This document shows positions 40,634 to 56,186 of a stretch of 64,000 nt of DNA, one piece after another (the first letter of the stretch is position 1; each line of letters starts with the position of its first letter). The position numbers were made by a program, and so were the translations under genes. The DNA is taken from the IMG/VR virus record IMGVR_UViG_3300028676_000003, positions 304,550 through 368,549 of that record; one strand, 5' to 3'. The notes under the pieces were generated by a model. The model was not told where the DNA came from. It ran no database searches and saw only the letters and a program-made list of their open reading frames with translations.

Positions 40634-41023
40634 ATGAAATTTAGAACGTATAAAACAAGAGAAGAGAAACTAAAGCAAACGCTTAAGGGACTTCTCTTAA
40701 ATAAAACAGTAAATCAAGATAATTTAGATGGAGTAATCAAGACTATCAATGACTACGAAAAGAATAACTTAGATACAATCGAAAAATTAAAGAAAGATAA
40801 GTTACTCGAAACAAAAAGAATAAGCGGTGCTTTAAAACAAACAATCAACGCTCATGGACCTATCACTAACAATCTTATTGGAAGTGCAACAAAACGAATC
40901 TATGGAGCCTTATTACATAAGCCTGAAAAGAGAACACATATAAACCTTGATATTGGTACATTTATCCTAATACTTATTGCAACAGTATTATTAACAGTCG
41001 CCAGTATCGTAATACTAATATAA
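40634..41023 (+). CDS. protein with C-terminal membrane anchor
   Basis: helical body plus terminal TM segment. Confidence 0.65.
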   Translation: MKFRTYKTREEKLKQTLKGLLLNKTVNQDNLDGVIKTINDYEKNNLDTIEKLKKDKLLETKRISGALKQTINAHGPITNNLIGSATKRIYGALLHKPEKRTHINLDIGTFILILIATVLLTVASIVILI

Positions 41024-41547
41024 TGAAAAAAATAAAAAAACTTGCTATTTTCGATTTTGACGGAACACTTGTTGACACTCCACTACCTGATATTGGGAGA
41101 CTTACGTATCAAGATAAGACGGGAAAAGCCTGGCCTCATGAGGGATGGTGGGGTAGAGAATTAAGCCTTGATATGGATATCTTTGATATGCCAATTGTTC
41201 CACAAGTAATTGAAGATTACCAAAAGGAGAAGTTAGAAGACTCTACTGCTCTAATTATGCTTACTGGTCGTATGACCAAGCTAAGGGATTCAGTTGTCAA
41301 GATTCTTGATTCACATAGTCTAGAATTTCATGAATATCACTACAACCGTGGTGGAGCTACTGAAGTTGCTAAGATTAAAACAATGGAACAACTTCTTGAA
41401 AAGTACCTTCATGTTGAAGAAATCGCAATGTGGGATGATAGAGAAGCGCATATCGCCATTTTTCAAAAATGGGGTGATGAACAAATCAGACAAGGAAATA
41501 TTAAGAGTTTCCAAATAACTCATATTCCAGCAGATAGACATAAATAA
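41023..41547 (+). CDS. Swiss-Army-knife RNA-repair-like HAD phosphatase
   Basis: IFDFDGTL..TP, WW, LTGR, MWDDR..H. Confidence 0.8.
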   Translation: MKKIKKLAIFDFDGTLVDTPLPDIGRLTYQDKTGKAWPHEGWWGRELSLDMDIFDMPIVPQVIEDYQKEKLEDSTALIMLTGRMTKLRDSVVKILDSHSLEFHEYHYNRGGATEVAKIKTMEQLLEKYLHVEEIAMWDDREAHIAIFQKWGDEQIRQGNIKSFQITHIPADRHK

Positions 41548-43523: not shown

Positions 43524-45515
43524 ATGATTGAAATTAATGATATCCTACAAGGAAGAATTAGCGTTAATGCTAGTGGTTCTGCGTACTTGGTAAGCCCCGA
43601 TTTACCAAAAGACATTTATCTACACAAGTCTAACACTAACAAAGCGTTACACTTAGATACTGTAAAAATAAGAATAATTGAAGGTAAAGACAATAGTCGT
43701 AAACTTGAAGGTGAAGTAATAGAAATAGTTGAACGTTTTAGAACTGAGTTCGTTGGAGTAATCCAAATAAACGCTAAACATGCTTTCTTCATTCCTGATA
43801 GTAGAAAACTCATCAATGACTTCTTTATTCCAAAAGATAAATTGCTTGGAGCAACTGATGGACAAAAAGTAATTGTTAGACTTACTGAATGGAAAGACGA
43901 TGCCAAGAACCCTAACGGTGAAATTATCCGTATTCTTGGGAACGCTGGTGAACACGAAACTGAAATTCACGCTATCCTTGAAGAATATGGTTTACCATAT
44001 GACTTCGAAGAAGATGTACTTGCCGAAGCTAGAGCAATCCCTATTGAAATCCCACAAGCAGAAATTGACAAGCGTAGAGATATGCGTGATGTTATTACAT
44101 TCACTATCGACCCTGCTGATGCTAAGGATTTCGATGATGCTTTAAGTGTTGAATGGGTTAACGGTGAATTGTTCCTTGGTGTTCACATTGCCGATGTATC
44201 TCACTACTTAAGACCTGATACTGAATTAGATAAAGAAGCCTATGCAAGAGGAACAAGTGTTTATCTTGTTGATAGATGTGTGCCAATGCTTCCTGAGAAC
44301 TTATCAAACGGATTATGTTCGTTAAGACCACATGAAGATAAGTTATGTTTCTCAGCTGTATTCAAGTTGGACCATAACGGAAGTGTTCTTGAAGAGTGGT
44401 TTGGTAAAACAGTAATCAACTCTAATCATAGATTCTCTTATGAGCAAGCTCAAGAAATCATTGAAGCTGAAAAAGGTTCAACAACTCTTATTTACAAACC
44501 AAGAGGTAATGGTCCTTCAATAGGACCACACCACGAAGAAATTGCTAATGTTAACAAATGTTTCCAAGCAATTCGTGACTTGAACAAGATTGCTCAGAAG
44601 ATGCGTAAAGCTCGTCTTAAACATGGTGCCTTATCATTTGATAAACAAGAGGTTAAGTTTGACCTAGATGAAAACAATAAACCTATAGGTATCAAGTTTA
44701 AGACTGCTAAGGATTCTAACAAGCTTATTGAAGAATTTATGCTTCTAGCTAACAAGCATGTTGCACAATTCATCAATAAAAAGGAATTACCTAACGTAAA
44801 CAGGTCTCACGATAAACCTAACGAAGCTAAAGTAGAAGCTCTTAAGGAGTTTGTTAAGCAATTTGGGTATGAAGTGAAGAATTCTAGCCCTGAAGAGACT
44901 ACTAAGTCCCTTAATCAGTTGCTAAAAGACGTTAGAGGTACTGCCGAAGCTGATATGATTGATAATCTAGTAGTAAGAACAATGCAAAAAGCTACATATA
45001 GCACAAAAAACATTGGTCACTACGGTCTTGGGTTCAAAGATTACTCACATTTCACTTCTCCTATTAGAAGATATCCTGATGTAATCATTCATAGACTACT
45101 TGGAATGTATTTAGACACTGAAAGAGTATCTAAAACTGTTCCTAAGATAGAAAAGCTAGAAGGAAGATGCTTACATTTATCTGAAAGAGAGAAAAAAGCA
45201 CAAAAAGCGGAGCGTGATTCAATAAAATACATGCAATGTATCTATATGAGTGAGAATATTGGTAAGGTTTTCCAAGGAATTATCAGTTCTGTAACAGAAT
45301 ATGGTATTTTTGTAGAGATTTTAGAGAATAAATGCGAAGGACTTATCAAATTATCTAATATTGAAGGTGATGCTTATACAGTAGACATGAATAATTATAC
45401 TGTTAAAGGATATAACACTGGTAAAAAGCTTAGACTAGGTGATGTAGTACATGTAATTGTATCTAGTGTTGATATAGAGAAAAAAAATATCAATCTATCA
45501 TTGATTAATTTGTAG
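43524..45515 (+). CDS. rnr: ribonuclease R
   Basis: TIDP.DAKDFDDA, VHIADVSHY, RGTSVY, IEEFMLLAN, HFTSPIRRYPD, C-terminal S1. Confidence 0.95.
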   Translation: MIEINDILQGRISVNASGSAYLVSPDLPKDIYLHKSNTNKALHLDTVKIRIIEGKDNSRKLEGEVIEIVERFRTEFVGVIQINAKHAFFIPDSRKLINDFFIPKDKLLGATDGQKVIVRLTEWKDDAKNPNGEIIRILGNAGEHETEIHAILEEYGLPYDFEEDVLAEARAIPIEIPQAEIDKRRDMRDVITFTIDPADAKDFDDALSVEWVNGELFLGVHIADVSHYLRPDTELDKEAYARGTSVYLVDRCVPMLPENLSNGLCSLRPHEDKLCFSAVFKLDHNGSVLEEWFGKTVINSNHRFSYEQAQEIIEAEKGSTTLIYKPRGNGPSIGPHHEEIANVNKCFQAIRDLNKIAQKMRKARLKHGALSFDKQEVKFDLDENNKPIGIKFKTAKDSNKLIEEFMLLANKHVAQFINKKELPNVNRSHDKPNEAKVEALKEFVKQFGYEVKNSSPEETTKSLNQLLKDVRGTAEADMIDNLVVRTMQKATYSTKNIGHYGLGFKDYSHFTSPIRRYPDVIIHRLLGMYLDTERVSKTVPKIEKLEGRCLHLSEREKKAQKAERDSIKYMQCIYMSENIGKVFQGIISSVTEYGIFVEILENKCEGLIKLSNIEGDAYTVDMNNYTVKGYNTGKKLRLGDVVHVIVSSVDIEKKNINLSLINL

Positions 45516-45545
45516 AAATAGAGTATATTAGGTAAAAATTTACTT

Positions 45546-46331
45546 ATGATTACTGAAGATACATTTATACTAGATTACTTAGAAAGAAACTTTATTGTTA
45601 GTACAAGCGAATACCACTATTATGTGACTGAAGCGATACCTCAACTAGAACTAAATAAAACATATACCTTTGCTACGTTCCAACAATACTATGAAAAGTT
45701 GTTTACCAAGTCTACTATGTATGTTTTCAATACATGGTTTGAACAGAAAACTAGTGCTTTAGTAAAGGAATTAGAAGACTACGTTGATACGCTTGAAAAT
45801 ACTGATGGTGGACTAGCTATGCTTGATAAGATTATCACTAGGTTTAAAAACCCAAATGGTGTTATTAAATATCATGATAGTTTTATTATGAATTTTTTCG
45901 ATAAGTACTACAGAAAAAAATGGCTTATACCAATGCTTAATGAGCTTAAGGAAACATTTCTTTCCTCACATGGAAAGAGTGCCAGCATGCTTGCAATCGT
46001 AGATAATAAGTTAGAATTCGATACAGAGAGACATAGAGACTATGCTTTCTCATACATAAATGAATGGTATTCAGATGAGATTCTCGGACAACAAATAACT
46101 GCGTTGTTCCGAGAATTTGTCGTTACACTAGGTGAGCGAAATTGGAAGATAACTTGGGTTGGTCATGGACCTGTAACCAAGGAAATAATCGAAGCTCATT
46201 TTAAAGATGAAACTGATTTTCAAAAGAAACTTGTAATGATGAAATTCAACCAATGGTACGAACTAGCAATCATTGAAGCCTCTGAAAGACAGATAAAACA
46301 CAATTTTAATACTGGTTTGTTTGGATATTAA
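45546..46331 (+). CDS. hypothetical protein (YL..NF family)
   Basis: FILDYLERNF. Confidence 0.65.
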   Translation: MITEDTFILDYLERNFIVSTSEYHYYVTEAIPQLELNKTYTFATFQQYYEKLFTKSTMYVFNTWFEQKTSALVKELEDYVDTLENTDGGLAMLDKIITRFKNPNGVIKYHDSFIMNFFDKYYRKKWLIPMLNELKETFLSSHGKSASMLAIVDNKLEFDTERHRDYAFSYINEWYSDEILGQQITALFREFVVTLGERNWKITWVGHGPVTKEIIEAHFKDETDFQKKLVMMKFNQWYELAIIEASERQIKHNFNTGLFGY

Positions 46332-46343
46332 AAAAACATTGTG

Positions 46344-46351
46344 TACCTTTG
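46344..46351 (+). promoter_or_regulatory. Bacteroidota -7 box TACCTTTG
   Basis: TTTGG upstream. Confidence 0.7.
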
Positions 46352-46371
46352 TAATCTAAATACTTAATAAT

Positions 46372-47364
46372 ATGTTTAAAGAAGTTAAAACAATTCAAAG
46401 TTCAGATGAGAATGTTATGAAGCTTGTTTTTGAAAAAGACAACGCTGTAGCTGAAGCAGTATTATACAAATATCCTACCTACGAAGAAAGAACAGTTATC
46501 TGTTGCTCAACTCAAAGCGGTTGTCCTGTAGGTTGTAGATTTTGTGGTGCAGGTGATTACTTCGTAAGGTCACTAAAAGCAGATGAGATAGTTTATCAAG
46601 TAGACTATTGTCTTGAAAGTCAAGGTATTGATGCTTCAAAAATTGAAAAGTTCCAAATCATGGTTATGTCAATGGGTGAACCCCTATTAAACTTCAAGGA
46701 GCTTGAAATCGCATTTGATATTCTTTATGCGAAATACCCTAATGCTAAGTTGCTTATTAGTTCAATCGGCCCACGTGTTGATTATGAACCAATCATGAAA
46801 ATGTGTGAAAGAATCCCTACTGTTGGATTACAATTCTCGGTTCATGAAAGCACTGATGAAAGCAGAGACAAGCTTATTCCTTTTAAAGCAAAATTAACTC
46901 TTAAAGAGATTTCTGAGGTTGGTGAGGTATTCCTAATCAGAACTGGAAGAAAGCCTTACTTCAACTATTGCGCTCACGAGCATAATTCTAGTGAAGAAGA
47001 TGCTAAAAGAATTGGTGAGTTGTTTAACCCTGATGTTTTCGAAGCAACCATTAGTGTTGTGTGTGAACGTGAGGAAAGCATTGCGGCCGCTAACGTAAGA
47101 CAAAGAGAGCTTGCAAGTACCTTTATGGATAATCTAAACAACTTAGGTTTCTCAACAAGAATGTTTGACCCAGCTGGTCAAGATGATATTGGTGGTGGAT
47201 GTGGTCAATTATGGTTTGTTCAATCTTGGATGGAACAGAATCAACACTTGGCTAAGAAGTCTGTAGGTTTTGGAATGGATGTTATTCATGCTCCTACTGC
47301 AACTAATTTGCTACAACAACAAATCCAAGAAGCTATTGCTGTTACTAACTCTTTAATTCAATAA
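46372..47364 (+). CDS. RlmN/Cfr-like radical SAM RNA methyltransferase
   Basis: CCSTQSGCPVGCRFC, MSMGEPLLN, DIGGGCGQL. Confidence 0.8.
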   Translation: MFKEVKTIQSSDENVMKLVFEKDNAVAEAVLYKYPTYEERTVICCSTQSGCPVGCRFCGAGDYFVRSLKADEIVYQVDYCLESQGIDASKIEKFQIMVMSMGEPLLNFKELEIAFDILYAKYPNAKLLISSIGPRVDYEPIMKMCERIPTVGLQFSVHESTDESRDKLIPFKAKLTLKEISEVGEVFLIRTGRKPYFNYCAHEHNSSEEDAKRIGELFNPDVFEATISVVCEREESIAAANVRQRELASTFMDNLNNLGFSTRMFDPAGQDDIGGGCGQLWFVQSWMEQNQHLAKKSVGFGMDVIHAPTATNLLQQQIQEAIAVTNSLIQ

Positions 47365-47366
47365 AA

Positions 47367-48833
47367 ATGAATTTACTAGATAAACTAAAGAATTATTTTC
47401 TTTACGCTGATAAATACAAGACTGACTCAGAAGCAGTTATTATCGCATGTTACTTCAACCCACAAAACAATCCTTACAGACTTGAAGCTTTCAATAAGTT
47501 TTATGAGTCTATCAAGCACTTGAACCATCGTATCGTTGAATGTGTGATTGGTGACGCTATGCCACAATTACCTGTTACTCCGTCGATTGCAAGGGTTAAT
47601 ACCAAGGATTTGTTATGGCACAAAGAAGCACTTTTAAATGGTATTATCAAAACTCTACCTAAGAAGTTCAAGTATGTGTTTTGGTTAGATACTGATGTAT
47701 TATTTACCAATAATGATTGGCTTATCCAAGGTGTTGAAGAATTGAAATACAACAATATCATTCAACCATTTGAGTATTGTATTCACTTGGAAGAAGGAGA
47801 AACTAAGCCTAGTTTTGATGTTGCCTTTGAACGCAAGTTTGTTTCAAACCCTGCAATCAGACACCAAAGCATTTGGAGAAGCTTCTGTGCTAATCATCGT
47901 ACAACTGATTTCTCAGATGATACAAACTACGACAAGCACGGTCACGTTGGCTTCGCTTGGGGTGCAAGACGTGAAATCCTTGACAGCATGCCACTTTATG
48001 ATAAAGCACTTATCGGTGGAGCGGACCATATCATTGCTCATGCTTCGGCAGGTCAAATTGGTCACTCTTGTCTTATGAAGTCTTTTACTGAAGATATTGA
48101 TGCTGTTAACGAATGGTGTGAAGATTTTGATTTGCTTATCAATGGTAAGATTAGCTATGTTAAAGGTGACTTGTATCACTTATGGCACGGTGACGTTGCA
48201 AAGCGTCAGTATTTAAAACGTGTTCAAGAGTTTACACCAAAGGCCAAGAAGATTACTAAGAAAGACGAAAACGGACTCTATGTTGCTGACCAATTGGAAG
48301 GTGACAAATACGTTAACGAATACTTTGACCAACGTGAACCTAAGTTTCCAAAGGTTGATACTTCATTCGGTAAGTTATATCCACATGCTCAAGGGTTGCC
48401 AAGTCCAACATTTGATGAATTGATGAGAGAAAGAACTGAGAGATTATATGGCCCAAAAGATTCAAAAATAGAAATAAATAAACCTAAGAAGGAGAAATCT
48501 ATTGGTAGTCCATTTACCCGACCAACAAAACCAACTCATCCAAGACCCATAGATGCTAATATCTCACGTCAAGAATATGTTGAGATACCACAGGATGAAT
48601 TTGGTATTGACCTTACTGACTTTGTTGAAGCAATTATCATTGAAGAGGTTATTGATGATATTTTCAGTGACCCATCAACTGAGTTTGAAAACGGACAAAA
48701 CCAAGAAACTGGATTCGAAGATGGATTTGGTGGCGGTGGTTTCAGCGGTGGTGGTTCAGGTGGAGATTGGAATGAGCCAACACAAGATAATAACGATACT
48801 CAAGACTACACAAGTAGCGACAATTTTTCATAA
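47367..48833 (+). CDS. glycosyltransferase-like domain with low-complexity Gly-rich tail
   Basis: WHKEALLN, WLDTDVLF (DxD), HLWHG; C-terminal GFGGGGFSGGGSGGDW. Confidence 0.55.
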   Translation: MNLLDKLKNYFLYADKYKTDSEAVIIACYFNPQNNPYRLEAFNKFYESIKHLNHRIVECVIGDAMPQLPVTPSIARVNTKDLLWHKEALLNGIIKTLPKKFKYVFWLDTDVLFTNNDWLIQGVEELKYNNIIQPFEYCIHLEEGETKPSFDVAFERKFVSNPAIRHQSIWRSFCANHRTTDFSDDTNYDKHGHVGFAWGARREILDSMPLYDKALIGGADHIIAHASAGQIGHSCLMKSFTEDIDAVNEWCEDFDLLINGKISYVKGDLYHLWHGDVAKRQYLKRVQEFTPKAKKITKKDENGLYVADQLEGDKYVNEYFDQREPKFPKVDTSFGKLYPHAQGLPSPTFDELMRERTERLYGPKDSKIEINKPKKEKSIGSPFTRPTKPTHPRPIDANISRQEYVEIPQDEFGIDLTDFVEAIIIEEVIDDIFSDPSTEFENGQNQETGFEDGFGGGGFSGGGSGGDWNEPTQDNNDTQDYTSSDNFS

Positions 48834-49513
48834 TGAGAATATTAACAATTAGTGACACTCATAATAAACATAAACAAATCCCATCGGCTTATATAGATAA
48901 TGTCGATGGGAATTTTGATATGATAATACATGCAGGTGACTTTACTGTTGGCGGGTTTCAATTAGAAGCAATAGAATTCCTAGAATGGTTTAGCAAGCTA
49001 CCATTTGAACATAAGATTCTTATCGCTGGAAATCACGACTTCTATTTTGATGAAGCACCTGAATATGCGATAGAAGCCCTGCTTGCACAATACCCTCAGA
49101 TTACCTATTTAAACGACTCAGGTTGTGAGATAAATGGGTTTAAGATTTGGGGTTCACCAATAACTCTTTATTTCCATAATTACGCATTTAACAAGCTTCC
49201 TTGGGACATAAATGAACATTGGGACATGATACCTGATAATACTGATATTCTTGTCACACACGGCCCTATTTGGAGTTATTTGGATTTGATTGATGAAGGT
49301 TATAATAAGGGTTGTGATAGACTACTTGAACACTTGCCAAGGCTCAAGGACCTTAAATTGGTTGTTCACGGACATATCCATGAGGGATATGGGACCGCTG
49401 TAACACCTGAAGGAGTAATGATTGTGAATGCAAGTGTTCTTAACAGACATAACATAATGTGGAACGCACCAATAGGTGTAGAAATAACCAAAAAAGATGG
49501 AAGCGAAGACTAA
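48833..49513 (+). CDS. metallophosphoesterase (MPPED/239FB-like)
   Basis: ISDTH, HAGDF, AGNHD, THGP, HGHIHE. Confidence 0.9.
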   Translation: MRILTISDTHNKHKQIPSAYIDNVDGNFDMIIHAGDFTVGGFQLEAIEFLEWFSKLPFEHKILIAGNHDFYFDEAPEYAIEALLAQYPQITYLNDSGCEINGFKIWGSPITLYFHNYAFNKLPWDINEHWDMIPDNTDILVTHGPIWSYLDLIDEGYNKGCDRLLEHLPRLKDLKLVVHGHIHEGYGTAVTPEGVMIVNASVLNRHNIMWNAPIGVEITKKDGSED

Positions 49514-49871
49514 AAAAGAAGTAATAATAAGACTAATGATGGGTAATTATTGGGCACCAACTGAGAATTTGTTGTTCTTGCTTGAACGTGATTTATACAC
49601 CAAGTTTTTCAAGTGTCCTACAAGCATCTTTATATTTGGTATATTAGAGACTTGTCCTCATTTGAGTATTGGTGGGAAACCAGTTGAATTGAGTCTTGAG
49701 GACCTGAAAGAACTGATACCTGAAATCTTATCAGATATGAATGGTTTTGAAACTACCTTTGCTGATGAAGATTGGCAGAACCTAGAAATCATATCAAGTG
49801 TTGATGGGAACTTTGTTAAAAAGAAACTAAACACTACCAAGGCTTATATGATGGAGTTTTTTGAAGATTAA
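49497..49871 (+). CDS. hypothetical protein
   Basis: ORF. Confidence 0.6.
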   Translation: MEAKTKKEVIIRLMMGNYWAPTENLLFLLERDLYTKFFKCPTSIFIFGILETCPHLSIGGKPVELSLEDLKELIPEILSDMNGFETTFADEDWQNLEIISSVDGNFVKKKLNTTKAYMMEFFED

Positions 49872-49883
49872 ATACTTAAAATT

Positions 49884-50222
49884 ATGAATAGAAAAGACGC
49901 AAAGATTATTGCACAAACGATTTCACTAGCACAACTAGCTGATATGTTTAAAAACGCCAAGGCTGGAATTACAGATTGGAAACAACCAAGTAAGGTTAAC
50001 AAATCAATCACAAAAGGAACCGCTTGGAACGTTTTAACCCAAGGTTTCATTGGTGAAAGCACGATGATTACTTCACCGTCATTAATGGCTAAGAAAAACA
50101 TGATTCATGAATTTGGAGACTTCTTGCCTGAAGAAATAAAATTGGTTAAGCTTAAACCTAAAAAGGGTGATATAGCAATTGTACATCAAGAACCAAAATT
50201 TACAAAGTTTTTCGGAGAATAA
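49884..50222 (+). CDS. hypothetical protein
   Basis: ORF; HEFG, HQEP. Confidence 0.65.
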   Translation: MNRKDAKIIAQTISLAQLADMFKNAKAGITDWKQPSKVNKSITKGTAWNVLTQGFIGESTMITSPSLMAKKNMIHEFGDFLPEEIKLVKLKPKKGDIAIVHQEPKFTKFFGE

Positions 50223-50246
50223 CTTGTATATGTGAAAAAGGTTTAG

Positions 50247-50254
50247 TACCTTTG
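50247..50254 (+). promoter_or_regulatory. Bacteroidota -7 box TACCTTTG driving a non-coding region
   Basis: CTTG at 50223; no ORF for ~350 nt downstream. Confidence 0.75.
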
Positions 50255-50257
50255 TAA

Positions 50258-50590
50258 TGCGATTTTAGTCAGTTTGGGAACTGGCAGGGGCGGTGGGAGT
50301 CACGCCATTAGAAATTTACTTTTCAGATAGAAAGTTAATGATGTGGTATGCGCACTTACGGCCAGTATACGTCTGGTCGAAAAGTCCTCTGTGATTCGAT
50401 AAGCAAGGACAGACAAAACTAGTAGGTATAAAATCCTATGTACCGCAGTCTATTAGAGGACTATTTAACAACTATCCATCCATTTTGGGGTGTTCATCCA
50501 TCTAAAGATGATATGAAATGTTAGCATACACGGAAAAGGTGACTAACACGTGGGGTTCGAATCCCCACTATGCTACTATAATGCGCATTA
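50258..50590 (+). ncRNA. unclassified structured RNA with 3' tRNA-like T-arm/acceptor element
   Basis: GC-enriched, several stems; GTGGGG-TTCGAAT-CCCCAC; TAGCATA/TATGCTA; ends can pair (TAATGCG/CGCATTA). Confidence 0.65.
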
Positions 50591-50603
50591 ATTAACTTAA
50601 AAA

Positions 50604-51299
50604 ATGAAAATTTTAGCCCTAGGCGATACACATGGACGTGTATTATGGAAAGATATTGTTCAAAAAGAACAAGACTACGACAAAATCATCTTTATTGGTG
50701 ACTATTTTGACTCTCGTGAAGGTGTTTCACCACAAACACAACTTGAAAACTTCAGAGATATCCTTGAATTCAAGAAAAATAACATGGATAAAGTAGTTTT
50801 ATTACTAGGAAACCACGATTTTCACTACTTAAAAGAAGCGCAAGAGAAATATTCTCAGTATCAAATGCCAATGTTCAACCTTTTTAACGATGAAATACAA
50901 CCTGCGGTTGAATATTCACTTGTTCAAGTGTGTTTTGTACATGGTAATTACGTTTTTACACATGCTGGTGTTACAAAAACTTGGGCTACCGACTATAATA
51001 TCGATATAAATGACCTAGAGAACTCAATAAATACTCTTTTATTGGAGAATCCTAGTGCTTTTAGGTTCCATATGGGTACAAATTTCAGTAATAGTGGAGA
51101 TGATAAGGACCAATCACCTATATGGGTGCGTATTCCGTCCTTATTAGCAGACCCCCTACCTGAAGTAACCTATATAGTAGGACATACTACACTACTAGAG
51201 CTTACTATGATACAAAACCTTATAGGTATAGATACCCTAGGTACTACAGGGGAATACCTCATTATTGAAGACAACGTGCCAAGAGCAGAAAAATTATAA
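50604..51299 (+). CDS. calcineurin-like metallophosphoesterase
   Basis: LGDTHG, IGDYFD, LGNHD, THAG, VGHT. Confidence 0.9.
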   Translation: MKILALGDTHGRVLWKDIVQKEQDYDKIIFIGDYFDSREGVSPQTQLENFRDILEFKKNNMDKVVLLLGNHDFHYLKEAQEKYSQYQMPMFNLFNDEIQPAVEYSLVQVCFVHGNYVFTHAGVTKTWATDYNIDINDLENSINTLLLENPSAFRFHMGTNFSNSGDDKDQSPIWVRIPSLLADPLPEVTYIVGHTTLLELTMIQNLIGIDTLGTTGEYLIIEDNVPRAEKL

Positions 51300-51301
51300 A
51301 T

Positions 51302-51490
51302 ATGGATATAGGTAAAAGGATTGACGGTGATATAGGCATAGGTAAAATTCGTAATCGTCTATCTGATGAATCAACAAGACAGGTTATTTACTCTCTTGAT
51401 ATCGATGTTTTCACTGATTTCTTTAACGAATTATACGATGTTGAAGAAATAACGTTAATTATTGAAGAATCATTTGGAATATCAATTTAA
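51302..51490 (+). CDS. MxLG-family micro-protein (MDIGK)
   Basis: ATGGATATAGGTAAA. Confidence 0.55.
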   Translation: MDIGKRIDGDIGIGKIRNRLSDESTRQVIYSLDIDVFTDFFNELYDVEEITLIIEESFGISI

Positions 51491-51495
51491 TTTAT

Positions 51496-51503
51496 TACCT
51501 TTG
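51496..51503 (+). promoter_or_regulatory. Bacteroidota -7 box TACCTTTG
   Basis: TTTGG upstream. Confidence 0.7.
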
Positions 51504-51514
51504 TAATCTAAATA

Positions 51515-51865
51515 ATGAACAACATGAAAAAAACACTTATAATTTTAAGCATAATAGCACTTGTTAGCTGTAAAAAGGTACCTAACAATGAACAGACCCT
51601 TGTAATTACTGTTGACGAATACAATCGTCTTAAAGATGGAACAGCTGTTTCATACCCGAAGCCATTCGAATATATCGATTATGATGATTTGATTGAAAAT
51701 GGTAAGAGTGGTATTGTCTTAGGTACTGATGGACATGAATTTATTGTGAATAAAAAAGGTTTTGATAGAGAAACTTTTGTTCATTCTCCTGAGTGTCCAA
51801 AGTGCGAAGCTAAGCTTAAAGAAATCATCTATCAAATTACCAAAGAAAAAGATTCAATAAAATGA
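51515..51865 (+). CDS. lipoprotein, paralog A
   Basis: LVSC lipobox; GTDGHEF, HSPECPKC. Confidence 0.7.
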   Translation: MNNMKKTLIILSIIALVSCKKVPNNEQTLVITVDEYNRLKDGTAVSYPKPFEYIDYDDLIENGKSGIVLGTDGHEFIVNKKGFDRETFVHSPECPKCEAKLKEIIYQITKEKDSIK

Positions 51866-52224
51866 GAAAACTATTAATCGCAGTGGCTTTATTAAGCCTT
51901 ATTGGTTGTAGAGAAGAAGATGATAGAACAACAAACAGCGTCACTATCAGCAAAGAAGAATACAATCAACTCAGAAATACAAATGCTGATTACCCTAAAC
52001 ACTTTGACCTTATTGGTTATTCAAGGTTTAATGGTTATGAAAATGCAATCATTATGGGTTCTGATGGTCATGAATACCTTATAACTAGAAGTGGTTATAA
52101 CAATGAATCTCAGAATCACTATATTGAATGTAAGAAATGCATGGCGAAAGAACAACGTATTGAAGAATTATTGATGGAGATTATCAAAAACACATCAAAA
52201 GACTCTACAAGTGTTGTTAGGTAA
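51862..52224 (+). CDS. lipoprotein, paralog B
   Basis: LIGC lipobox; GSDGHEY, HYIECKKC. Confidence 0.7.
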   Translation: MRKLLIAVALLSLIGCREEDDRTTNSVTISKEEYNQLRNTNADYPKHFDLIGYSRFNGYENAIIMGSDGHEYLITRSGYNNESQNHYIECKKCMAKEQRIEELLMEIIKNTSKDSTSVVR

Positions 52225-52381
52225 AGTAGTCACTACTGTAACAATCAGTCATATGCTTGATTTCATTGCAATCTTACCATCAACGGAAAGAAAGAGTCTT
52301 ACAGTTATTGCAGGTAGAGACACTTGGAAAATTGTAATCGATGCTGTTAATATAGGAATAATAACTAGAATAAAATACTAA
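52211..52381 (+). CDS. MxLG-family micro-protein, 56 aa, GTG start (MLLGK; not in track)
   Basis: GTGTTGTTAGGTAAA; stop overlaps smpB ATG. Confidence 0.5.
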   Translation: MLLGKVVTTVTISHMLDFIAILPSTERKSLTVIAGRDTWKIVIDAVNIGIITRIKY

Positions 52382-52821
52382 TGAAAAGCGTAGCTAAAAA
52401 CAAAAGAGCATATTTCGATTACGAAATTCTCGAAAAATATACAGCAGGGATTCAACTACAAGGTTCAGAAGTTAAATCAATCAAGGCTGGAAAAACATCA
52501 ATAGCTGAGGCTTATTGTTATGTCCACGAAGGTGAACTTTTCATCAAAGGAATGCATGTAACTGAACACAAAGAAGGCGGTAAGTACTATAATCACGAAC
52601 CTTTTAGAGATAAGAAGCTTCTTATGAAGAAGAAAGAAATCGCTAACTTGGACGAAAATGTTGGCCGTAAAGGCTTGACTATTGTACCACTTGACGTTAT
52701 ATTATCTAACACTGGTTTCGTAAAGATAGAAATTGGATTAGCTAAAGGAAAACATAATTATGACAAGCGTAACTCTTTGAAAGAGAAAGACTTGAAACGT
52801 GAAATTGAACGAAATTCGTAA
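52381..52821 (+). CDS. smpB: SsrA-binding protein
   Basis: NKRAYFDYEI, AGI.L.GSEVKS, HEP.R.KKLL, GLTIVP, AKGK..YDKR. Confidence 0.95.
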   Translation: MKSVAKNKRAYFDYEILEKYTAGIQLQGSEVKSIKAGKTSIAEAYCYVHEGELFIKGMHVTEHKEGGKYYNHEPFRDKKLLMKKKEIANLDENVGRKGLTIVPLDVILSNTGFVKIEIGLAKGKHNYDKRNSLKEKDLKREIERNS

Positions 52822-52825
52822 AGCT

Positions 52826-53161
52826 ATGAAAATAAGAAGCGTTGTTACTTCAACATTACATTTTGTTGAAGCTGATGGGTTAGAGTATGTAAGAAGTCAA
52901 TTCATCAGATATGGTGAGACTGTTGTTACATGGAAAAGAAATTTTGATTGGAAAGAGGCCATTAGTGGTAAGATTCTCAGTAATGTAGAATTGGAAACAT
53001 TATTTGCAAGTCAATTCATTCAACATTTCAAAGAAGAAAGTGAGAATATGAGTGATGTAGACGACTTTACAACAAAGCCTCTACCACCTAAATCACAACT
53101 TCTTAAAGAGGGAGTACCACCACCGCCAAGAGATGGTGGAGACACAGTAGTTAAAAATTAA
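52826..53161 (+). CDS. hypothetical protein
   Basis: likely start ATG 52826 after smpB stop. Confidence 0.6.
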   Translation: MKIRSVVTSTLHFVEADGLEYVRSQFIRYGETVVTWKRNFDWKEAISGKILSNVELETLFASQFIQHFKEESENMSDVDDFTTKPLPPKSQLLKEGVPPPPRDGGDTVVKN

Positions 53162-53179
53162 TTTAAAATATATTATTAC

Positions 53180-54091
53180 ATGAAACAAATCAAAATTTCG
53201 CATAAACTTACTGATAGAAGTAACGAAGCTTTTAAACAATACTTAAGAGAAATTGCGGATATAGAACCTTTTACCCCTGAAGAAGAATTGGTTTGCGCTC
53301 AAAAAGCCTTTGCTGGTGATAAAAAAGCACAAAAAGAATTAGCGAAAAGAAACCTACGTTTCGTTGTGAGTGTTGCTAAGCAATACGTTACAGATTCTTT
53401 ATATCTATCTGACCTAGTGGAAGAAGGAAACATTGGAATCCTTATTGCGGCTGAAAAGTTTGACCCAAGCAAAGGATATAAGTTTATTTCGTTTGCTGTA
53501 TGGTGGATTAGAAAGATAATCCTTGAACACATTGCCAAGCATGGTAAGATTGTTCGTTTACCTGCCAATAAGCTTAACGCAATGTCAAAGCTTGATAAAC
53601 AATTTGCAGAATTGGAACAAAAGACTGGTCGTAAGGTAGATGTAATGGAAGTTATTGCCGAGTTTGGTAGCAACTCCGATGCCTACAATACCCAACAAGA
53701 CGAGTTTAAGGAGTTTATGTTCTTGGATTCATTAGGTTCAATGAACACAGATTCGCTAGACCGTCAGATTGGTAATGAAGACAACGGTGGAACTAGTACC
53801 CTTGCTGAGATGATGAGTGATGATATGTTTAAATCTACAGACCACTTAATCACAGACAAGAACATCATCGATGAAATCAATATTGCTCTTGAAACACTTA
53901 AGCCTCGTGAGAAGAGAATCATTGAATCATTCTTTGGTTTAAATGACCAAAAGGTTATGACACTTAAGGAATTAGGTGAAGATGATGGAATCAGAGTAAC
54001 ACGTGAAATGGTTCGTCAAATTAAAAATAAGACGCTTAAAGCGTTACAAAATAATCCTAGGATTAGACAAGCATATGAGTCAATGAACTAA
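53180..54091 (+). CDS. rpoD: sigma-70 factor, Bacteroidota RpoD-like (no region 1.1)
   Basis: YLREI, NLRFVVSVAKQY, DL..EGNIG..AAEKFD..KG.KFISFAVWWIR, TL.E.G...TRE.VRQI. Confidence 0.9.
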   Translation: MKQIKISHKLTDRSNEAFKQYLREIADIEPFTPEEELVCAQKAFAGDKKAQKELAKRNLRFVVSVAKQYVTDSLYLSDLVEEGNIGILIAAEKFDPSKGYKFISFAVWWIRKIILEHIAKHGKIVRLPANKLNAMSKLDKQFAELEQKTGRKVDVMEVIAEFGSNSDAYNTQQDEFKEFMFLDSLGSMNTDSLDRQIGNEDNGGTSTLAEMMSDDMFKSTDHLITDKNIIDEINIALETLKPREKRIIESFFGLNDQKVMTLKELGEDDGIRVTREMVRQIKNKTLKALQNNPRIRQAYESMN

Positions 54092-54411
54092 TGAAAGAAA
54101 TCATACACAAATTTTTAACAGATAACTTCTATATGGATTTATCTACCTTTTCTTCTTATTGCCTGAAAGAGTCAGGTAATCATAATAGTATTTATTTAAA
54201 ACTAATATACAATAAGTTAGGTAAAATATTTGGGTATGAGCCTGACAGTGATGAATTGATTGATATTGTCTCAGAATGGAACACCCAACAAATCGCTATA
54301 CTAACCCGTAAGATTAACCATATAAAGTACAGGTTGTATAGCGATACTGGTTCTGATAAGGTGGAATTAGATGAGATGTGCAAGCTTATTAAAGAATTTG
54401 AATTTGAGTAA
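54091..54411 (+). CDS. hypothetical protein (YL..NF family)
   Basis: IIHKFLTDNF. Confidence 0.6.
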   Translation: MKEIIHKFLTDNFYMDLSTFSSYCLKESGNHNSIYLKLIYNKLGKIFGYEPDSDELIDIVSEWNTQQIAILTRKINHIKYRLYSDTGSDKVELDEMCKLIKEFEFE

Positions 54412-54463
54412 TAAGCGGTGTACACATTTGTGTACATAGAGTGTTTTTTTATGCTAAACTAGA

Positions 54464-54471
54464 TATTTATA
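54464..54471 (+). promoter_or_regulatory. putative second-class promoter TATTTATA
   Basis: 18 nt upstream of ATG 54490. Confidence 0.4.
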
Positions 54472-54489
54472 ATAAAGAAAACACATCAG

Positions 54490-54888
54490 ATGGAAAAAAA
54501 TATAATCAAAGAAAAGTTAAGAGAATCTTTATTCAGTCGTATTAAAGAGACTAACAAGACTAGCGGAGAACAACACCCGCAAGAGCATAAAGATGAAGAA
54601 GGAACAGGGAATGGAACCTTTAACGACTTAGATAAGGAAGAGAAAAAGAAAGTTCAAACCCTTACAAAGAAAATCAAGAACGCAACACAAGGACCAAGCA
54701 AGTTACTTAAGTTATCTCAAGTAATGGATGCGGCTGGTGTAGGTGATGCAGACAATGCTACTGACAGGTCAGCAATCGGTAAGGCCGTATCAGGTAAGCC
54801 TGATGCAGACGGTAAGATTAGACACTTGAATGTAAAGCAAGCTAACGCCATGGGGAAAGTCGTAGACAACCCTGTTGCATTTAAATAA
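54490..54888 (+). CDS. hypothetical protein with IKxxLRExL N-terminal tag
   Basis: IKEKLRESL resembles IKQRLREVL of the 2H protein. Confidence 0.7.
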   Translation: MEKNIIKEKLRESLFSRIKETNKTSGEQHPQEHKDEEGTGNGTFNDLDKEEKKKVQTLTKKIKNATQGPSKLLKLSQVMDAAGVGDADNATDRSAIGKAVSGKPDADGKIRHLNVKQANAMGKVVDNPVAFK

Positions 54889-54893
54889 TACAC

Positions 54894-54923
54894 AAAAGCC
54901 TCGAAGAAATTCGAGGTTTTTTT
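54894..54923. terminator. bidirectional intrinsic terminator
   Basis: AAAAGCCTCGAA-GAAA-TTCGAGGTTTTTTT between convergent genes. Confidence 0.8.
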
Positions 54924-55098
54924 ATACATCTATTTTATGTGTGTTGGGAATTTTTGAATATACTGTAGTCCACATATCTTTTATTTTATATCTAACTAAT
55001 ACATGAATGATTTTATTGACTTCAACCCTAACTTCTTTACAAACAACGTTATCAACAGCGTCTGAGAAATCATCATATAATTCTTTACCTAAATCCAT
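54922..55098 (-). CDS. MxLG-family micro-protein (MDLGK)
   Basis: ATG at 55098 with its own promoter. Confidence 0.6.
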   Translation of the reverse strand: MDLGKELYDDFSDAVDNVVCKEVRVEVNKIIHVLVRYKIKDMWTTVYSKIPNTHKIDV

Positions 55099-55116
55099 AT
55101 TAATAAGTTTAAGTTG

Positions 55117-55124
55117 CAAAGGTA
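55117..55124 (-). promoter_or_regulatory. Bacteroidota -7 box TACCTTTG (minus strand)
   Basis: divergent from the trpS promoter. Confidence 0.7.
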
Positions 55125-55180
55125 CTACTTTATTTTGGAAATAAAAACTAAAAAGGTTTTTTTATTCGAAAAAGTTTTCA

Positions 55181-55188
55181 TACCTTTG
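55181..55188 (+). promoter_or_regulatory. Bacteroidota -7 box TACCTTTG
   Basis: upstream of trpS. Confidence 0.65.
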
Positions 55189-55211
55189 TTGTCTAATTAA
55201 TATAAAACGAT

Positions 55212-56186
55212 ATGGCAAAGATACTTACTGGTATTCAAAGTACTGGAACACCACACTTAGGCAATCTATTAGGTGCTATTATTCCCGCTATTGAACTATC
55301 GAATAACCCTGATAATGAATCTTATTTATTCATTGCTGATTTACACTCAGTTACACAAATTAAAGATGGTGAAACCCTTAGAGAAAATACCTTTAGTACT
55401 GCCTGTGCTTGGTTAGCTTGTGGTTTGGACCCAAATAATGTTACCTTTTACAGACAATCAGATGTTCCTCAAACTACTGAACTAAATTGGTATTTGAATT
55501 GTTTCTTTCCATATCAACGATTAAGACTAGCTCATTCATTTAAAGACAAATCTGATAGGCTTGAAGATGTTAACGCTGGATTATTCACATATCCAATGCT
55601 TATGTCAGCTGATATCCTTTTATATGATGCTGAGATTGTTCCTGTTGGTAAGGACCAATTACAACATTTAGAGTTTACACGTGATGTAGCTACCAAGTTT
55701 AACCATCAAATGGGTGAAACTTTTGTTATACCTAGACCTAATGTTCAAGGAGAGACACAGACAATCATAGGTATAAATGGTTCTAAAATGAGTAAATCAG
55801 CCAACAATACTATCAACATATTCGCCAGTGATAAGGATTTATATAAACAAATCATGAGTATTGAAACTGATAGTACACCACTTGAAGAACCTAAGAACCC
55901 TGATACTTGTAATGTATTTAAATTATGCTCATACCTTGCAAGTGAGGAAGAACTTGAATCGCTTAGATTCAAATATTTAGCAGGTGATTATGGTTATGGG
56001 CATGCAAAAAAATATTTATACATTCTTATACTTATGAAATTTGAATCAGAAAGAGAAAAGTATAATTATTATATCAATAATCCTGATGTTGTTAATAATT
56101 TGTTATTAGAAGGAGCTGAAAAAGCTAAGCTAGTTGCCAATACTACACTAGGAAGAGTTAGAGAAAAATTAGGTTTTAACAAATAA
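55212..56186 (+). CDS. trpS: tryptophanyl-tRNA synthetase
   Basis: TGIQSTG.PHLGN (HIGH), YPMLM.ADIL, VPVGKDQ.QH.E, KMSKS. Confidence 0.96.
   Translation: MAKILTGIQSTGTPHLGNLLGAIIPAIELSNNPDNESYLFIADLHSVTQIKDGETLRENTFSTACAWLACGLDPNNVTFYRQSDVPQTTELNWYLNCFFPYQRLRLAHSFKDKSDRLEDVNAGLFTYPMLMSADILLYDAEIVPVGKDQLQHLEFTRDVATKFNHQMGETFVIPRPNVQGETQTIIGINGSKMSKSANNTINIFASDKDLYKQIMSIETDSTPLEEPKNPDTCNVFKLCSYLASEEELESLRFKYLAGDYGYGHAKKYLYILILMKFESEREKYNYYINNPDVVNNLLLEGAEKAKLVANTTLGRVREKLGFNK

Follow-up and report, generated by a model that had tools for sequence, protein, structure and literature searches.

The DNA analysed here (the window) is a stretch of 64,000 nt, C1:304550-368549, that makes up the last 64 kb of the 368,549-bp virus record IMGVR_UViG_3300028676_000003 (C1), which CheckV rates as complete. 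The + strand carries all of the genes of the window, and the largest gap free of open reading frames (ORFs) on that strand lies at 50223-50603 at ORF cut-offs of both 40 and 50 aa. An earlier note, made from the sequence alone, had singled out this gap as the largest and as GC-enriched, both of which are borne out (GC 0.39-0.40 vs. 0.342 for the window), and had placed in it an RNA of about 330 nt with a 3' module that resembles a transfer RNA (tRNA). The small ORFs within the gap (20-38 aa) were judged not credible. We think it probable that the gap is the gene for a stable phage non-coding RNA (ncRNA) of an undescribed family, consisting of an effector core and a 3' handle that is finished with CCA; the matured RNA, at ~263 nt, is shorter than the note had supposed. 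The features discussed below are listed in Table 1.

A promoter-like element does precede the RNA, as the note had said, although it is not the textbook sigma-70 consensus (a generic sigma-70 scan gave no call there) but a recurrent phage motif, TTGnnn-N17-TACCTT(TGTA). Allowing at most one mismatch, GTACCTTTGTA is present genome-wide in 72 copies on the + strand and 16 copies on the - strand with TTGnnn 17 nt upstream, and it stands before the transfer-messenger RNA (tmRNA) gene, tRNA clusters and numerous ORFs (examples are window 50246-50256, C1:223304 and C1:224620). The orthologous RNA in the related contigs L010, L015, L051, L052 and L054 is headed by the same motif. The sigma factor that the phage encodes at window 53180-54091 may recognize the motif, and judging by its position transcription would start near 50259. 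A direct repeat, TAATGCG, is found just after this promoter (50255-50261) and again just after the 3' end of the RNA (50579-50585); the second copy is contained in the palindrome TAATGCGCATTA. A perfect TATAAT (50577-82) overlaps that copy and may serve as promoter for the downstream phosphoesterase gene.

The context of the RNA in relatives was found by way of homologues of SmpB and of the flanking phosphoesterase encoded on IMG/VR and JGI metagenome contigs. Gene order is preserved in six contigs (RNase R - p261 - p488 - phosphoesterase 1 - non-coding stretch - phosphoesterase 2 - SmpB - sigma), and an orthologue of the RNA occupies the non-coding stretch of L049, a ~90% strain whose layout is the same, and of L047, L051, L052 and L054. 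In L015, L010 and L068 it is inside ORF-free blocks of 2-2.4 kb that also hold odd tRNA-like genes (L010, L015, L037 and L038 were first taken to lack the RNA and to contain odd tRNA-like arrays only; the core was later found in their 2-kb non-coding blocks). The orthologues of L065 (= L074, a 362-kb phage), L059 and L070 were found with a degenerate pattern, and a looser pattern gave one new member, L154, among the IMG/VR matches listed. The family thus comprises 12 members in related jumbo phages and the distant L154. No smpB or phosphoesterase gene is present in the fetched DNA of L059 and L070, and the L154 RNA is also not near smpB. Contigs L016-L018 keep the synteny and have no match to the covariance model R1 described below. 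In the short contig L050 (1-553; phosphoesterase at least 90% identical) the DNA immediately upstream of that gene is coding and unrelated to the RNA, and may be an inserted gene.

The core of the RNA is a cloverleaf-like four-way junction in which a long-range helix (H1) encloses three hairpins (H2-H4). RNAalifold on a MAFFT alignment yielded two hairpins only, and H1 and H3 were set by hand and then checked by counting pairs. Model R1, built from the 12 family sequences with the H1-H4 structure, scores all 12 at 89-140 bits (the window at 89.5 bits), as expected since these are the sequences from which it was built, and it finds a single copy in the window's genome. Outside the training set it matches L154 (42 bits, E about 2e-6), which keeps H1 with a different sequence (UAUGAUU/GGUCAUA) as well as H2, H4 and the AAUCAAAACC strand. 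The hairpin loops of the core are near-invariant across the family; H2 has four invariant pairs and two that covary, and H4 has 5 bp and a 7-nt loop and lies directly against the 3' strand of H1. The window has the H1-H4 junction with its AAUCAAAAC strand followed by a T-arm/acceptor helix ending N73-C74, the combination by which we define the new family.

Covariation with homologues from related phages, which the earlier note had proposed to look for, is present: in the model-made alignment 92.7% of the cells in core pairs are paired, compared to 31-43% when the 3' partners are slid by 1-3 columns, 16 of the 25 core pairs have changed on both sides, and the core pairing score was reached by none of 500 shuffles. 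The slid controls and L154 support this signal, which we therefore take to be real. G:U pairs are frequent in H1-H3 and so place the RNA on the + strand. The closest comparison is that with L049, whose flanking proteins are 96-99% identical to those of the window, yet the RNAs differ at 42 positions; there are two 1-nt indels and paired substitutions, and all pairs still form in spite of 12 substitutions within the modelled helices, with four full double compensations (two in H1, one each in H4 and H7). Such compensatory changes between strains with nearly identical flanking proteins argue for selection on structure. Downstream of the core, three further stems (H5-H7) were recognized by inspection, and across L049, L047, L051, L052 and L054 they vary with pairing kept (for example, H5 GUC/GAC becomes ACC/GGU and H7 CAUC/GAUG becomes CACC/GGUG). 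Folding energy alone proves little here, since that of the single sequence is only mildly unusual relative to shuffles (z = -2.1 on the + strand and -2.4 on the - strand).

The pairings drawn in the earlier note fared unequally against the family. Stem 50360-65/50373-78 is H2. Stem 50268-74/50279-85 is conserved, though it belongs to a leader that is removed (below). The 8 bp of stem 50383-90/50455-62 are complementary in the window and appear in its centroid fold, but the stem has a C:A mismatch in L049 and is contradicted by the family's support for the local helix 50384-91/50404-10 (H3) and a separate H5 at 50447-50/50459-62. The pairing 50346-51/50524-29 is not conserved, and neither it nor the two mutually exclusive folds built on it have support outside the window's lineage, while the pairing of the termini (50255-61/50584-90) is not conserved in the relatives and falls outside the mature RNA.

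At its 3' end the RNA carries a tRNA-like minihelix, an acceptor stem and T-arm with no standard anticodon arm in any of the 12 members. As the note had seen, it templates no CCA and has no G3:U70 pair. Both its T-arm and its acceptor helix 50522-28/50569-75 covary completely across the family. The T-stem is fully paired (5/5) in 12 of 12 members, and the acceptor in ten of the 12 (7/7; 6/7 in the window, where G50550:C50568 stands in for pair 7:66) with its own sequence in each lineage. Position 3:70 is C:G in the window RNA and G:C or A:U in relatives, and positions -1 and 73 can pair in 11 of 12 members (U:A in eight, G:C in two and A:U in one). The linker that joins the acceptor 5' strand to the T-stem has 21 nt in the window, 34-52 nt in L059 and L070, where it contains a normal-looking D-arm, and 132-146 nt in other relatives; in L154 the whole 3' module is replaced by an ordinary tRNA ~100 nt downstream of the core. 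Position 74 is C in 12 of 12 members, and CCA is templated in none. The same is true of the phage's other RNAs with this end: 62 of 63 T-arm genes in C1:224000-303000 template C74 with A or T as the next letter, CCA is templated by a single one, and the phage tmRNA follows the same rule (C74 but no CA).

Is this RNA made, and where are its ends? The groundwater metatranscriptome X13 contains 34% of the sampled words of 50240-50600 and 12% of those of 49900-50900, so essentially all of the X13 words lie within the element. X13 holds a single 278-nt contig of it at a depth of 10.8, and the flanking genes have depth 0. Nucleotides 1-178 of this contig correspond to 50384-50576, with two substitutions and 15 nt (50529-43) absent; after 50576 there are two extra letters, CA, and nucleotides 181-278 then correspond to 50316-50413 (junction ...UAUGCUAC + CA + UUACUUUU). 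The first and last 30 nt of the contig are identical, an end overlap which in a k=31 graph makes it a cyclic unitig of 248 nt. A DNA contig from X7, a run of the same study, shares the two substitutions of X13, at 50483 and 50499 in loops of the H5-H7 region, and retains the 15 nt; at 50577 it reads A, not C, and it runs colinearly past 50576 and on into the phosphoesterase gene. The 15-nt difference removes exactly the linker hairpin CAC-GGAAAAG-GUG plus AC, leaving a linker of 6 nt, and may be a strain indel or removal at the RNA level.

The CA after C74 gives A73-C-C-A at the canonical distance from the T-loop, and we read it as CCA completion on a trimmed transcript; its addition fixes the 3' end at C74-CA and the 5' end at U50316, 4 nt past the conserved ATTAGA. 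The head-to-tail join is either a true circle sealed by a ligase from a 5'-phosphate and a 3'-OH or the product of end-to-end template switching by reverse transcriptase, and under both readings the ends are those of a discrete RNA. The mature 5' end leaves outside the RNA two leader hairpins, of which the first is conserved in L047, L051, L052, L054 and L015 (100% of its cells pair among six relatives, with one pair changed on both sides). The second keeps its pairing with changed sequence (GGCGG/C-CGCC in the window, UGCAG/CUGCA in L015, ACAG/CUGU in L052 and L054), as read by eye apart from two pairs covered by the column count, and is directly followed by ATTAGA at 50307-12. A second promoter at 50316 was considered and rejected, because the hairpins upstream of it covary as RNA.

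Table 1. Positions of the RNA, its parts and neighbouring genes (window coordinates unless another contig is named)
Feature	Position	Strand	Remarks
Phage-type promoter	50224..50256	+	TTGTAT 50224-29, 17-nt spacer, TACCTT 50247-52 within GTACCTTTGTA 50246-56
Leader hairpin 1	50268..50285	+	7 bp, loop UGGG; upstream of mature 5' end
Leader hairpin 2	50289..50306	+	5 bp, bulged A50302, 7-nt loop UGGGAGU
Mature RNA body	50316..50576	+	261 templated nt and non-templated CA, ~263 nt; X13 contig
Four-way junction core, cloverleaf-like	50343..50446	+	model R1, pair counting
H1	50343-48/50441-46	+	long-range helix enclosing three hairpins
H2	50360-65/50373-78	+	
H3	50384-88,90,91/50404-10	+	
Single strand GACAAAAC	50412-19	+	family consensus AAUCAAAACC, invariant
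H4	50423-26/50435-38	+	abuts H1 3' strand
H5	50447-50/50459-62	+	by inspection
H6	50477-81/50488-92	+	by inspection
H7	50495-98/50507-10	+	by inspection
3' tRNA-like minihelix	50522..50576	+	acceptor and T-arm without anticodon arm
Acceptor 5' strand AGCAUA	50523-28	+	internal to RNA
Variable linker	50529-49	+	
T-stem 49-53/61-65, UGGGG/CCCCA	50551-55/50563-67	+	
T-loop UUCGAAU	50556-62	+	
Acceptor 3' strand 66-72, CUAUGCU	50568-74	+	
A73	50575	+	pairable with U50522
C74	50576	+	last templated CCA position
RNase R	43524-45515	+	~5 kb upstream of RNA
Radical-SAM protein	46372-47364	+	
Metallophosphoesterase 1	48833-49513	+	
Metallophosphoesterase 2	50604-51299	+	directly downstream of RNA element
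SmpB	52381-52821	+	1.8 kb downstream of RNA
Sigma-70 factor	53180-54091	+	
Class I Trp/Tyr-type synthetase	55212-56186	+	
Long-insert tRNA-like genes	C1:48944-49035, 235425-235516, 278912-279058, 279732-279861, 297099-297314		
Long-insert tRNA-like genes in relatives	L010 1900-3000; L015 3030-3160, 4590-5260; L017 2268-2989		

The RNA matches no Rfam family. Nothing in Rfam matched the window at gathering thresholds, and with E allowed up to 10 the matches were limited to tmRNA over 15 nt of the T-loop (12 bits, threshold 47) and mascRNA-menRNA (15.7 bits); ARAGORN called no tRNA or tmRNA in it. All 4227 Rfam models run on the window and on L010-L018 found nothing beyond tRNA, and in the window none of the ROOL, GOLLD, group I/II intron or self-cleaving ribozyme models matched (ROOL was also searched for in whole records, with a silent control, and that result carries no weight). 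A blastn search of the element against 50,697 phage records and a search of IMG/VR with the exact T-arm/acceptor pattern had no match, a hairpin-1 pattern gave chance matches only, and none of 46 pattern matches in a scan of GTDB genomes was confirmed by R1. No counterpart RNA is described in Rfam or in the literature searched. The note's view that the element fits neither tRNA nor canonical tmRNA, and that it is a novel ncRNA, thus survives the Rfam, ARAGORN and covariation checks that it had named, and the RNA-library contig is confined to the element.

Several known identities were tried individually. It is not a tRNA: 21 nt (6 in X13) separate the acceptor from the T-stem, there is no anticodon/D-arm cloverleaf, and the Rfam tRNA model does not match the RNA even with E allowed up to 10. 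An intron-split tRNA, its 5' half in the leader hairpins and its 3' half in the T-arm, was rejected because the full acceptor pairs locally in every relative, and no acceptor 5' strand precedes hairpin 1. The string at 50381-88 that resembles GAAAGUCC of RNase P RNA is not conserved in the relatives. Y RNA was rejected because Ro60 was not found (there is no Ro60/TROVE domain in the complete 368-kb record), and there is no Rfam match to it.

The phage is rich in other genes for RNA metabolism. The public runs that contain the record are peat, groundwater, soil and freshwater metagenomes, and the closest INPHARED phages by neighbouring protein, Lak megaphages and a 636-kb uncultured phage, have only 31-38% identity. 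ARAGORN finds 62 tRNAs in the whole genome (C1:49566-302525). It missed the full-length canonical tmRNA at C1:223383-223753 (66 bits vs. a threshold of 47; G3:U70, only C74 templated). A CCA-adding enzyme is encoded at C1:230731-231099 and two PF09414 (Rnl2-type) RNA ligases at C1:306408 and C1:253976; RtcB was not found in the phage genome. Within the window, 43524-56186 is a block of RNA-metabolism genes, from RNase R to the Trp/Tyr-type synthetase, whose order is kept across related phages, and an RNA ligase (1745-2443) and a "Swiss army knife" RNA-repair HAD domain (41023-41547) are encoded as well. Elsewhere there are tRNA-like genes with long inserts (92-216 nt) and a good acceptor stem and T-arm, which score 34-43 bits with the Rfam tRNA model and to which ARAGORN is mostly blind; in relatives they form arrays adjoining the RNA. 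They could be genes with introns, genes with extended arms or further mimics. ARAGORN also calls a tRNA with anticodon CUA at C1:228804-228879 (labelled Pyl), a possible amber suppressor that hints at stop-codon reassignment in part of the genome.

We propose the following scheme for the RNA. It would be transcribed from one of the phage's own promoters, and a leader of ~55 nt with two conserved hairpins would be cut off to give the 5' end U50316. The leader hairpins and ATTAGA may mark this processing site, and an RNase E- or RNase Y-type nuclease would suit such an AU-rich single-stranded site. The 3' end would be made as for the phage's tRNAs and tmRNA, templated to C74, trimmed and completed to A73-C-C-A by the CCA-adding enzyme. 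The minihelix would then be a handle that recruits the enzymes of tRNA end maturation and so defines and protects the 3' end, with no part in decoding or tagging. The four-way junction with its invariant loops and strand is the likely effector; it is conserved, single-copy and has invariant loops, while the minihelix varies in sequence and insert, and for these reasons we regard the core as the functional part. It would probably bind some component (protein or RNA) of the tRNA or translation machinery, a partner in tRNA metabolism or the ribosome being suggested by the placement of the gene among tRNA and tRNA-like genes and by the tRNA-like topology of the RNA.

The CCA-capped end might in addition be sealed by a ligase. 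We entertain, as a doubtful extension of the scheme, the idea that the RNA is naturally circular, an Rnl2-type phage ligase joining the CCA 3'-OH to the 5' phosphate of U50316 after leader removal and CCA addition. Such a circle, unusual as a natural RNA of a prokaryotic virus, would resist 3' exonucleases, including the phage RNase R, would add a route to circular RNA that is new for bacteria and phages, and would put the CCA end to a new use.

Several points weigh against the interpretation of the gap as the gene for an effector ncRNA. Expression is seen at the level of contigs, in a single one that was assembled from one library of environmental RNA and that derives from a near-identical strain, and the junction could be mimicked by a tandem duplication in the DNA of the X13 strain or by a variant 5' end in that strain that templates CA. 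The alignment used for pair counting was fitted to R1, which inflates its numbers somewhat, and the family comprises only about 9 independent lineages. If RNase P normally splits the core from the minihelix, the active species could be a cleavage product and the full-length RNA its precursor.

Could the RNA instead be a decoy? The anticodon nucleases that the earlier note had in mind are unlikely targets, since the RNA lacks an anticodon arm; enzymes directed against the CCA end are conceivable ones. A CCA-tailed acceptor/T-arm helix without a decoding part might absorb host enzymes directed at tRNA 3' ends (toxSAS pyrophosphokinases, MenT-type nucleotidyltransferases) and so spare the tRNAs of a phage that invests heavily in tRNA and translation (62 tRNAs, tmRNA, SmpB, RNase R and CCA-adding enzyme). 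Both CCA-modifying defence toxins and phage tRNAs that escape defences aimed at tRNA are documented (PMC11559606, PMC10435456, PMC11555353). We nevertheless think a decoy unlikely: each lineage has its own acceptor sequence, so that no one tRNA is being imitated, and the best-conserved part of the RNA is its 5' core, which a decoy would not need.

Just as improbable, in our estimation, is a dimeric precursor from which core and minihelix are cut apart by RNase P or RNase Z like the members of a tRNA array, the full-length RNA being an intermediate. Minihelices are known RNase P substrates, the locus in relatives sits within arrays of tRNA-like genes, and in L154 a normal tRNA follows the core. 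However, the X13 RNA contig is unbroken across the acceptor 5' strand, and its junction joins the CCA end to 50316 and not to 50523, so that CCA-tailed full-length molecules exist; the -1:73 pairing extends the helix across the would-be RNase P site, and a lone minihelix of 54 or 39 nt would have no obvious use. The note's suggestion of maturation through a 3' mini-tRNA is thus upheld on the 3' side, where the non-templated CA completes CCA, but release of a mini-tRNA by RNase P is not what the data show, since the 5' extension is kept at the acceptor stem.

We consider it very unlikely that the RNA is a degenerate tmRNA partner of the phage SmpB, as the note had also suggested, whether as a second, reduced trans-translation RNA or as an SmpB sponge. 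It does have a T-arm and 3' CCA of the tmRNA kind (UUCGAAU loop, 5-bp stem, non-templated CA after C74), and smpB is 1.8 kb downstream and the RNase R gene 5 kb upstream in an order kept in six related contigs. Against this, the genome has a complete tmRNA with G3:U70 elsewhere, and the element has C3:G70 and no tag reading frame that is conserved among relatives by eye. Its acceptor 5' strand (50522/23-28) is internal, 206 nt from the mature 5' end at 50316, so that the termini do not form the acceptor stem. The tmRNA model matches the T-loop only, and in L059, L070 and L154 the RNA is present without a nearby smpB; the association with smpB is synteny within one clade only.

Least probable of all is a 5' leader that acts in cis in the mRNA of the downstream metallophosphoesterase, or a functionless, decaying remnant of a tRNA array, which the position directly upstream of that gene and the tRNA-like arrays at the same spot in relatives might suggest, because the RNA signal stops at 50576 with the phosphoesterase gene at depth 0 in X13, several ORFs intervene before that gene in L047, L051, L052 and L054, the RNA has other contexts elsewhere, and the compensatory changes between strains argue for selection on structure.

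The gene for a CCA-finished ncRNA is the interpretation that we carry forward. The purpose of the tRNA and translation gene sets of giant phages is debated, and this RNA adds to them a conserved and expressed molecule that is neither tRNA nor tmRNA and would be finished by the same machinery. It raises the question whether the CCA-adding enzymes and RNA ligases of phages also have substrates that are not tRNAs, and, being defined by exact ends and a covariance model and having a variable module beside a conserved one, it opens the question of tRNA mimicry beyond decoding.

Mimicry of tRNA by ncRNAs is itself already known from tmRNA, YrlA, mascRNA and viral tRNA-like structures. We could find no described counterpart for the combination seen here, namely a cloverleaf-like 5' domain, an anticodon-less minihelix with an internal 5' strand, an 8-bp acceptor helix, post-transcriptional CCA and a head-to-tail form in a clade of giant phages. 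Like tmRNA (RF00023), the RNA is phage-encoded, has a T-arm and acceptor with only C74 templated and CCA added post-transcriptionally, and is found near smpB and the RNase R gene; unlike tmRNA, it has no tag frame and no set of pseudoknots, and its acceptor 5' strand is not the 5' end of the RNA. A report on YrlA (bioRxiv 10.1101/312249) describes a modular ncRNA, found in phages too, with a tRNA-mimicking domain (T-arm, D-like loop). The phage RNA shares that modular plan, and differs in that the tRNA-like domain of YrlA is internal, closed and without a CCA end. Small stable RNAs matured by tRNA enzymes are also encoded among the tRNA genes of phage T4 (species 1 and 2, rnaC/rnaD), and they are shorter than the RNA described here; they are not known to have a head-to-tail form.

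The nearest parallels in principle are MALAT1/mascRNA, the tRNA-like-miRNA transcripts of murine gammaherpesvirus 68 (MHV68) and the 3' tRNA-like structures of plant viruses, which borrow tRNA processing without decoding. In all of these, as in the phage RNA, a tRNA shape brings end processing and CCA to a longer RNA, and the weak mascRNA-menRNA match reflects this shape. The minihelix agrees with the plant-virus structures in that its 5' strand is continuous with a long stretch of RNA upstream. MALAT1 and the herpesvirus transcripts lose their tRNA-like piece by cleavage, but the ncRNA described here retains it as its own 3' end. Those elements belong to eukaryotic cells and their viruses, while this one is encoded by a DNA phage and is joined to a conserved, cloverleaf-like partner domain.

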